From sequence record MT708547.1: DNA of 64,000 nucleotides; one strand, 5' to 3'. Below the pieces are notes generated by a model that saw nothing but the letters and a program-made list of their open reading frames with translations, was not told where the DNA came from and searched no databases. Below are positions 4,723-6,254 of this stretch, piece by piece; the stretch's first letter is position 1, and every line of letters begins with the position of its first letter. The position numbers and the translations under genes are program-made.

Positions 4723-4926
4723 ATGAAAGTTTATATTTTGGAAGTGGAAGAATGTAATTCATATTCTTACAGTGGTACACTATCACGTGTGGAGGCGGTA
4801 TTTGCCAGCGAGAAAGAAGCCCACACTGCCGGGATTCAAAAAGTAAAAGAAGGCTATGAAGGTTATAGCGTCGATGCTTATGATATTCAGGGCGATCTTT
4901 CAGTACTGAAAAATATGTTGACATAG
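4723..4926 (+). CDS. Hypothetical protein
   Basis: directly follows upstream stop. Confidence 0.75.
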   Translation: MKVYILEVEECNSYSYSGTLSRVEAVFASEKEAHTAGIQKVKEGYEGYSVDAYDIQGDLSVLKNMLT

Positions 4927-4949
4927 TTTTTTGTTACTGTATAATAATT

Positions 4950-4974
4950 AGGGGATCAATCGATCCCCTTTTTT
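4950..4974. terminator. Hairpin terminator
   Basis: AGGGGATC-AATC-GATCCCCT-TTTTT. Confidence 0.8.
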
Positions 4975-5043
4975 GTTTCAGTACTTAATTAATAATAGAT
5001 ACACTACCGCACCCTATGGGTTAGTGCCTTGTGTCCGGCTTAT
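4950..5043 (-). ncRNA. Short-RNA family copy G
   Basis: - strand TTGACT-17-CATAAT (5078-5050); GCC-GGACACAA-GGC; ACCC-ATA-GGGTGC-N6-GTATCTA. Confidence 0.65.
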
Positions 5044-5089
5044 GTAGTTATTATGCCAGTACTGCGAATATAAGTCAATAGGTAGTTTT

Positions 5090-5104
5090 GTAAAGAAGTG
5101 TAAA
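5090..5104. promoter_or_regulatory. GTAAA-N5-GTAAA box 11 nt upstream of copy G -35
   Basis: GTAAAGAAGTGTAAA. Confidence 0.6.
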
Positions 5105-5307
5105 TGCACAGGAAGCATTGTAAGGCGTTAATCTGTTGCTGGTGGCTGATAGTATAGAGAAGTGTTTTAGATTGATTGTAGGCCGTTGTAGGCGTTTATG
5201 AATAGTAAAGTACTGATATTGTTTAATGATCCCGGTATGTGCAAATTATTTTAATTTTTTTCATATTAGGTATTGACGGATTGTGTCAGTACTGGCATAA
5301 TGTATCA

Positions 5308-5375
5308 CATAGAGCGACGGGCAAGACAAGTAGTCAACCTGTAAGACATACGAAAACCAGGTGACGTTGCACTGA
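5308..5375 (+). ncRNA. Candidate ~70-nt three-way-junction RNA
   Basis: TTGACG-17-CATAAT (5273-5301); GCGACG/CGTTGC enclosing GAC/GTC and ACCTG/CAGGT. Confidence 0.5.
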
Positions 5376-5442
5376 TTCAGTACTGAATAATACATAACAT
5401 CTAAATGTTGACAGTACTGAAAAAATGTAGTATAATGATTCA

Positions 5443-5585
5443 CAGAAAGAAGCAATCCAGTAAGCATGGATTAGTGATAAACGTAGACCGGAATCACGAA
5501 AAACTTTCAAGGAAATACCCTTATATAATAAGGGAAGCGTTAAGCGTAGAACGTAAACGCGAAAGTCCTAGCCTTGAACTGAAAA
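5443..5585 (+). ncRNA. Candidate ~140-nt multibranch RNA
   Basis: TTGACA-17-TATAAT (5408-5436); AATCCA/TGGATT, GTGAT/ATCAC, TTCAAGG/CCTTGAA enclosing CCCTTA/TAAGGG and GCGTT/AACGC. Confidence 0.6.
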
Positions 5586-5708
5586 AGTAAACAAGGTAAT
5601 TTAAGAAAAAAGATTTAAAAAAGTAGTTGACAAGTACTAACGAGAATGAGATAATCTCTCTCGTTGAAACAAACAAACAATCTTAATCAAAACTTAAAGG
5701 TGAATAAA

Positions 5709-6209
5709 ATGGCTAAACTGAATTCTGTTGTTGTTGCTCTGATCGCTGGTGATGTTGCTGCTCTGAATGCTTCTTTCGCGTCGGTATCGATGGAAGATAT
5801 GAAAACTGTTCGCAATAACTTTAACGAGTTTTACTCGAAGTTTAAAGCGGCAAATGAAGCGGCGGAAGCGGCTGCAAAAGAGCGTAAAGCACAGATCGAA
5901 ACCGAAACGAAAGCCCTGGTAGATGCCCTGGTAACTGCTGGCCTGGATCTGGAAATGGCCGCCGAAGTCGCCAGCCAGAAAATGGCGGTTAAATATCCCG
6001 AACTGGCCGCGAAGCCGGAAACTGGTAAATCCTGGTCGTTTGAAACGGTATTCGTTAACCTCGACGGCGAAAAACTGGAAATTGGCACTAAAGGCAACAA
6101 AGGCAGCATGAAAGCACTTAAAGCGGCACGCGACGCAATTGCTGCCGGCGAGTACAAAGATCGTGCTGAATGGATCGCCGCACACGCCTGGACTGAAACC
6201 GAAGCGTAA
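5709..6209 (+). CDS. H-NS/MvaT-like nucleoid-associated protein
   Basis: Ala/Glu coiled coil ending ALVTAGLDLE (H-NS MLIADGIDPNE-like); C-term GEKLEIGTKGNK (MvaT GEVIETKGGN-like); high-expression codons. Confidence 0.5.
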   Translation: MAKLNSVVVALIAGDVAALNASFASVSMEDMKTVRNNFNEFYSKFKAANEAAEAAAKERKAQIETETKALVDALVTAGLDLEMAAEVASQKMAVKYPELAAKPETGKSWSFETVFVNLDGEKLEIGTKGNKGSMKALKAARDAIAAGEYKDRAEWIAAHAWTETEA

Positions 6210-6230: not shown

Positions 6231-6254
6231 AGCCTCCTAATTGGAGGCTTTTTA
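6231..6254 (+). terminator. Rho-independent terminator
   Basis: AGCCTCC-TAATT-GGAGGCT-TTTT. Confidence 0.85.

Follow-up and report, generated by a model that had tools for sequence, protein, structure and literature searches.

A conserved pseudoknot RNA element downstream of early promoters in Klebsiella phage Muenster and T7-like phages

Bases 1-64000 of MT708547.1, the 64,000-nt stretch analyzed here (the window), come from Klebsiella phage Muenster, a RaK2-like jumbo phage (Alcyoneusvirus). A 780-nt gap without a credible gene lies between CPT_Muenster_009 (4723-4926) and the H-NS-like gene CPT_Muenster_011 (5709-6209, plus strand). The initial annotation placed two promoter-driven RNAs in this gap, RNA 1 (5308-5375) and RNA 2 (5443-5585), and read them as two distinct phage sRNAs. 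Both lie inside the 20-kb terminal repeat of Muenster, and CPT_Muenster_011 is the first coding sequence downstream of both. The locus raises the question of whether these RNAs function on their own or as parts of the leader of the gene that follows.

Promoters, hairpin H and an optional cassette upstream of the H-NS-like gene

The label H-NS-like was upheld: CPT_Muenster_011, annotated in the record as a putative DNA-binding protein, matched the Pfam N-terminal domain Histone_HNS_N at 25.5 bits, above the cut-off of 24.5. Homologues sit at the same place in the Asteriusvirus EJP2 (L097, 151-744) and in Erwinia phage Hallingskeid (L098, 95-718), and share a C-terminal G-x-x-G-N motif region; among these three proteins, only that of Muenster reached the Pfam cut-off.

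Both promoters assigned to the RNAs were present on the plus strand. P1 (5273-5301) reads TTGACG-17-CATAAT with an extended -10 TG (10/12) and is of the early class, with CAGTACTG in the spacer, TG-n-CATAAT and then a conserved ATGTATCACATAG start region. P2 (5408-5436) is a perfect TTGACA-17-TATAAT promoter (12/12), in which the CAGTACTG octamer overlaps the -35 element. A third, gene-proximal promoter, P3 (5627-5655, plus strand), reads TTGACA-17-GATAAT with TG (11/12) and has an A-rich stretch 5' of it. P1 and P3 were invariant across the seven Alcyoneusvirus genomes aligned (Muenster, K64-1, RCIP0023, phiKp_21, RaK2, KP13-7 and OU509535), which show ~97% identity as far as the P1 start. 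The RNA 1 segment occurs in two versions that are ~65% alike, one in Muenster, K64-1, RCIP0023 and phiKp_21 and the other in RaK2, KP13-7 and OU509535. A palindrome, AACGAGA...TCTCGTT (5636-5665), covers the -10 element and transcript start of P3, is unchanged in most relatives and may be an operator or a 5' hairpin.

The architecture of P1 is repeated at dozens of early promoters in the window. At these sites CAGTACTG stands in the spacer directly 5' of the -10 element, and a short 5' hairpin and an SD sequence follow. The terminal repeat of Muenster is built from repeated units of this kind, each an early promoter with a 5' stem-loop. The octamer was found 82 times in the window (47-63329), against 0.4 occurrences expected, and is densest in 1-27000. 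Outside early promoters it is often lengthened to a 12-bp palindrome, TTCAGTACTGAA, and it looks like a putative site read by some factor.

On the plus strand, no intrinsic terminator was found between 4970 and 6231, and no T run follows the RNA 1 outer helix, hairpin H or the 7-bp stem of RNA 2. The first intrinsic terminator 3' of P1, P2 and P3 lies at 6231-6249 (plus strand), beyond the H-NS-like gene, and is also annotated in the record. As neither RNA has a terminator, both are most likely leaders of the H-NS-like gene, and transcripts that serve only as leaders of the gene at 5709 appear more likely, for both RNAs, than the separate sRNAs first proposed.

Between the two RNAs lies hairpin H (5376-5421, plus strand). 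Its lower stem is 10 bp long and its upper stem 4 bp (ACAT/ATGT), capped by a 9-nt loop, AACATCTAA, that is invariant in the seven relatives. The lower stem is formed by two CAGTACTG copies, at 5378 and 5412, and the 3' arm provides the -35 element of P2. The hairpin H fold gave z = -3.3. Among six distinct sequences (alignment A5), 94% of cells were paired and five pairs had changed on both sides; G-U pairs were consistent with the plus strand, and separate folds of the RaK2 and phiKp_21 sequences gave the same architecture. In RaK2 both palindromes are lost (AGGTATCA and TGATACTG) and mutual complementarity is retained, which favors a single-strand hairpin over two protein sites on duplex DNA. 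Hairpin H is a candidate processing or protein-binding site.

RNA 2 folds as it had been drawn, the 7-bp TTCAAGG/CCTTGAA stem with its two enclosed helices coming after two 5' hairpins, and this fold is better than chance (-32.4 kcal/mol; z = -3.3; 1 of 200 shuffles as good). It is held by an optional cassette of ~185 nt (5420-5606, plus strand) with GAAAAAA at both borders. The cassette also contains the -10 element of P2 and so makes a consensus promoter out of the 3' arm of hairpin H. It is present in three of the seven Alcyoneusvirus genomes (Muenster, K64-1 and RCIP0023) and is missing from phiKp_21, KP13-7, RaK2 and OU509535, with clean GAAAAAA boundaries. RNA 2 had only three homologues (95-96% identical); no further homologues or paralogues were found in the phage collection, the window or the fetched loci. 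The few substitutions among them fall in loops or turn A-U into G·A, with no compensatory base changes. In the third hairpin (CCCTTAT/ATAAGGG), positions 6 and 12 have both changed, from A-U to G·A, and the pair is lost. The statement that neither RNA contains an SD-led open reading frame was correct: the only long frame (5405-5590) has its start codon inside the promoter, and its changes are all non-synonymous (0 synonymous versus 4-5 non-synonymous), and it was rejected as a coding sequence.

To these genomes we added four runs of wastewater libraries, kept as contigs, which report presence and variants only and never starts, ends or strand. Most wastewater relatives lacked or diverged in 5310-5617. 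In run X1, depth was ~9 over 5364-5560 and ~400 in the flanks; these values are contig depths, and hence no more than a loose indication that the cassette is lacking in most environmental relatives. Contigs in runs X1 and X14 join 5310 to 5617, which would leave environmental relatives with either a diverged, RaK2-type RNA 1 and no cassette or with the whole segment absent. RNA 2, judged by these comparisons, is a dispensable, optional indel cassette, and alone it is of minor interest. In phage T4, PeSL cassettes are reportedly units of an early promoter and a stem-loop that mediate modular shuffling. The promoter and stem-loop units of the Muenster terminal repeat resemble them, as does RNA 2, a block of promoter and hairpins gained or lost between short direct repeats. 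RNA 2 differs from PeSL cassettes in that it has no open reading frame and in that no second copy was found as a recombination partner.

A pseudoknot within RNA 1 and its occurrence in phages

RNA 1 had been described as a three-way junction. This is the minimum-energy fold of 5308-5375 (-13.9 kcal/mol), and it is no better than chance (z = -1.2; 26 of 200 shuffles as stable). Two helices of the junction were retained, namely the outer helix (5314-5370, plus strand), in which GCGACG (5314-5319) pairs with CGTTGC (5365-5370), and ACCTG/CAGGT. The third, GAC/GTC, was rejected: its upstream GAC has no complement in EJP2 and Hallingskeid, and its GTC is taken up by a covarying stem of a pseudoknot that replaces it. 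When copies were placed side by side, the T of GTAGTC co-varied with the A of a GAC within the loop of the ACCTG/CAGGT hairpin.

The outer helix encloses an H-type pseudoknot core (5328-5362, plus strand) made up of S1, L1, S2, L2 and L3. The core lies in sense behind P1, whose -10 element ends at 5301. In S1 (6 bp), GTAGTC (5330-5335) pairs with GAC (5345-5347) and TAC (5349-5351), with A5348 bulged, and all six pairs form; in S2 (5 bp), ACCTG (5337-5341) pairs with CAGGT (5358-5362). The loops are L1, A5336; L2, TAA (5342-5344); and L3, GAAAAC (5352-5357). The unpaired A 5' of S1, the UAA in L2 and the GAA that opens L3, all features of the family, are present in Muenster.

A sensitive search with 5300-5425 retrieved 71 phage records of the Muenster type. 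The central 35 nt found matches close to the left ends of many T7-like genomes, and others in Citrobacter phage Tr1, Escherichia phage EJP2 (Asteriusvirus) and Erwinia phage Hallingskeid. The T7-type element was present in 484 of 50,697 phage records, T3 included, and in none of the 30 records listed was it annotated as an RNA. RNA 1 is not peculiar to Muenster, as T7 and hundreds of further phages carry the element too. Carriers comprise T7-like, SP6-like and Stephanstirmvirinae (phi92-like) phages and three jumbo genera. The genomes of Muenster, RaK2, EJP2, Hallingskeid and Tr1 each carry it once, and no extra copies were found in the window or the Muenster genome. Among 185,579 bacterial and archaeal species (one genome each), we found no prokaryote copies, the hits being two contigs of T7-like contaminants and three matches by chance; by these searches, the pseudoknot is phage-only.

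In T7 (NC_001604) the core occupies about nt 552-587, between promoters A1 and A2; it is 54 nt 3' of the A1 start as annotated and directly precedes the -35 element of A2. In T7, T3 and other Autographiviridae this stretch agrees with Muenster in its 34-35-nt core, in how S1 and S2 pair and in the invariant AAGUAG, UAA and GAA. As in Muenster, it stands in sense after the first host-type early promoter, with another promoter following at once.

Covariation supports both stems of the pseudoknot. Pairs were counted in 30 distinct cores (alignment A3), with controls in which the partners were slid by 1-3 columns. Pair cells were 97.9% paired, compared to 20-35% in the slid controls, and four pairs had changed on both sides: AU/CG/UA and CG/UA/UG in S1, and UA/AU and GU/GC/AU/UA in S2. 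None of 500 shuffles reached the observed covariation score. Family-wide, 96.7% of cells were paired in S1 (GUAGNN with the loop of S2) and 99.3% in S2 (NCCWG with CWGGN); because the aligned sequences are related, these cell counts overstate the number of independent events, and at least four unrelated phage groups each have their own pair combinations. The RaK2 core pairs GTAGCT with AGC-A-TAC and CCAG with CTGG, and thus preserves both stems via double changes. Conservation of structure among homologues, on which the initial annotation had staked both RNAs, was therefore seen for RNA 1 (97.9% paired, four compensatory pairs) and not for RNA 2, which showed no covariation.

A pattern search of IMG/VR, in which AGTAG, AA and GAA were fixed and the covarying positions left free, returned 63 contigs; the invariance of these three motifs is partly imposed by the pattern and hence is not independent evidence. 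A relaxed pattern added two more true members with a UCAG/CUGA second stem and one false positive in a coding sequence, and a pattern with CCSG/CSGG in S2 gave no matches.

An outer helix equivalent to that of Muenster, with differing sequence, is present in RaK2, Tr1, EJP2, Hallingskeid and SP6-like contigs. In the jumbo and SP6-like copies it stands at the same place with unrelated sequences, as judged by eye (TAGAG/CTCTA, ATCAA/TTGAT, ACCGAA/TTCGGT and CAGGAC/GTTCTG). T7-like phages differ in where the 5' arm stands: an extra covarying hairpin carries it in its loop, ~55 nt from the start, compared to ~6 nt for the outer helix in Muenster. Their 3' arm directly follows the core and overlaps the A2 -35 element; in T7 itself the arm is TTGAC, the -35 of A2. 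Across 34 distinct T7-like sequences, 5 of 5 outer-helix pairs showed double-sided changes and the three-helix model was 95% paired; some of these double changes represent a one-base register shift between subgroups, with complementarity in every subgroup. A simple test in which helix arms were swapped gave a mean length of 5.5 for own and 4.8 for cross combinations. This test did not discriminate, and the outer helix was therefore judged from position-fixed pair counts.

Sequence comparison shows RNA 1 to be a real RNA element whose structure is strongly conserved. To that extent the reading of the locus as two distinct phage sRNAs holds for RNA 1; the status of free sRNA, with terminators lacking, was left without support. 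A check against Rfam, which the initial annotation had proposed, was negative: Rfam 15 gave no match for Muenster 5273-5585 at E up to 1 (preQ1, SAM-II and ToxI included), and none for the T7, Dev2, EJP2, Hallingskeid or Tr1 copies. In a literature search that included the sequence string, the pseudoknot was undescribed, and only T7 A1 as a template was found.

Genomic context and possible roles of the pseudoknot

In jumbo phages, the gene after the pseudoknot is homologous to 5709-6209 (26-35% identity, with the C-terminal half clearly aligned). Hallingskeid, RaK2 and a 366-kb contig have the same order as Muenster: pseudoknot, A-rich stretch, second promoter and gene. In EJP2 the pseudoknot is ~45 nt 5' of the start codon of the homologue, with no clear promoter in the interval (a weak TTGATA/TATAAG pair is too near the SD to serve), and so looks like part of the 5' UTR of the gene. 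The genes downstream of the pseudoknot in T7-like phages are unrelated to the H-NS-like gene. A crude sigma-70 score upstream of all pseudoknot loci was weakly above that of shuffles.

Of 68 loci, 41 have an rrn-type boxA (GCTCTTTAACAA, perfect or with one mismatch) at 19-434 nt 3' of the pseudoknot, and none has one upstream, which suggests that podophage early leaders may recruit the host Nus complex. All 41 loci are on contigs of ~6-45 kb, podophage-sized where complete (T7-like and SP6-like). T7-like leaders mostly carry the boxA, whereas Muenster has none: no boxA was found in jumbo-phage pseudoknot leaders, and matches in the Muenster window were at chance level. The HK022 put and the rrn and lambda nut leaders likewise place a structured RNA soon after an early promoter and before a long transcription unit, and the podophage pseudoknot is co-linear with boxA. 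HK022 put RNA consists of two stem-loops and alters, in cis, the very RNA polymerase that transcribed it, which then passes terminators. The pseudoknot is not two stem-loops and has no sequence or model similarity to put, and a comparable effect on RNA polymerase would be hypothetical. The T7 early terminator is functional in vivo, which argues against general antitermination by the pseudoknot.

The best explanation, to which we give an even chance when it is taken as a whole, is that the pseudoknot acts in cis on the first-wave leader of the H-NS-like gene. RNA 1 would be the one Muenster copy of a phage-wide early-leader pseudoknot. Its outer helix would begin a few bases past the start of a host-type early promoter and enclose a 35-nt H-type pseudoknot bearing invariant unpaired AA, UAA and GAA. 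We infer that the RNA is made and that it remains on the mRNA: the P1 transcript would run unterminated through hairpin H, the RNA 2 cassette where present and P3, and then into the H-NS-like gene. The resulting leader, carrying the pseudoknot and hairpin H, would be ~400 nt in Muenster and ~215 nt in RaK2. The gene would be made with two or three alternative leaders, the pseudoknot being on the longest only, since transcripts from P3, and from P2 in phages with the cassette, would be without it. This would redefine the leader of the Muenster H-NS-like gene as a three-promoter unit. The pseudoknot, as a compact protein- or ligand-binding fold, may shield the long leader from Rho or RNases, or may set leader use. 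RNA 2 would have been inserted later and be dispensable, contributing a consensus promoter and ~165 nt of structured leader.

Several points weigh against a role in cis. The linkage to the H-NS-like gene is confined to jumbo phages, and the T7-like context, in which unrelated genes follow, suits a portable module with its own function in trans at least as well. Invariance of the loop nucleotides points to a specific partner, RNA 1 could be set free by processing at hairpin H or by Rho-dependent termination, and the protective role is read from position only. T7 deletion mutants missing parts of the A1-A2 region are viable. In the main alternative, itself doubtful, the pseudoknot RNA would instead be the first product of infection and act in trans without translation, being cut from the leader and then binding and neutralizing or redirecting a host protein. 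The target might be, for example, a defense nuclease or toxin, RNA polymerase, Rho or an RNase, and the cut might fall at hairpin H in Muenster and at the first RNase III site in T7. An element common to unrelated virulent phage groups, standing before different genes, is what would be expected of an accessory module that spreads horizontally. The pseudoknot is found without exception in the earliest region, the one transcribed by the host, a specific binding partner would fit its invariant unpaired nucleotides, and hairpin H, kept by compensatory change, comes straight after it as a conceivable processing site. Against release in trans, the RNA has no terminator or mapped processing site and, in EJP2, sits directly in a 5' UTR; it is unlike the ToxI-type antitoxin RNAs in Rfam, and one copy per genome makes a modest dose for a decoy.

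The case for two independent, separately functioning sRNAs is unlikely. Each RNA has a strong promoter, RNA 2 folds significantly better than shuffles and RNA 1 is conserved, but both are without a terminator, and RNA 2 is missing in four of the seven close relatives, is rare in wastewater populations, has no homologues elsewhere and does not keep the pair changed on both sides in its third hairpin. A small riboswitch-like aptamer, by which early transcription or translation would be adjusted to host metabolism, is more improbable still. PreQ1-I and SAM-II are among the smallest known aptamers, with short S1 and S2, a 1-nt L1, a 3-4-nt L2 and a 6-nt, A-rich L3. The pseudoknot is like them in size and topology and in its invariant unpaired bases; with preQ1-I, SAM-II and ToxI it shares a length of ~35 nt, the H-type fold, an A-rich third loop and conserved unpaired nucleotides. 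It differs from ToxI in not being in tandem repeats, and from preQ1-I and SAM-II in having no recognizable expression platform: the T7 3' arm abuts a promoter rather than a terminator or SD. Rfam riboswitch models gave no match up to E = 1, and absence from all bacterial genomes scanned would be unusual for a metabolite sensor.

An RNA that is near-unchanged across otherwise dissimilar phage families, and in every case at the outset of host-polymerase transcription, should mark an early need common to enteric phages; candidates are transcript survival, polymerase processivity and defense evasion. We tentatively propose that the pseudoknot may be a horizontally moved, translation-independent device of the first minute of infection that binds one specific host component, with the transcribing RNA polymerase/Rho machinery or an RNA-targeting defense protein as its conceivable, equally tentative target. 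If this is true, a previously overlooked class of phage RNA effector would lie in the most-used promoter region of T7. The T7 A1 region is among the most heavily used DNA in transcription research, and its covariation-supported fold, common to giant Klebsiella, Escherichia and Erwinia phages, is absent from Rfam and from the literature searched. T7 genetics offers a direct test of the pseudoknot.

Features flanking the leader

An annotated gene, CPT_Muenster_010 ('putative membrane protein', 5334-5510, minus strand, TTG start, 58 aa), overlaps the pseudoknot, hairpin H and the cassette. The gene is impossible in the four relatives without 5420-5606, and the call is therefore probably spurious.

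Two further promoters were seen at the upstream end of the gap. A perfect consensus promoter at 4918-4945 stops 5 nt short of the hairpin of a bidirectional terminator (4950-4969), so that its transcript would start within the terminator stem; in K64-1, RCIP0023, RaK2 and OU509535 this promoter is replaced by a different sequence and an extra open reading frame. On the minus strand, an early-class promoter (5078 to 5050; TTGACT, CAGTACTG, G, CATAAT) faces the same terminator at a distance of ~95 nt, and a GTAAA-N5-GTAAA box lies just upstream of it (5098-5112). This arrangement occupies 4950-5094; the stretch between promoter and terminator contains CCC-N3-GGGTGC-N6-GTAT, and parts of it show 90-96% identity in Erwinia and Escherichia jumbo phages.
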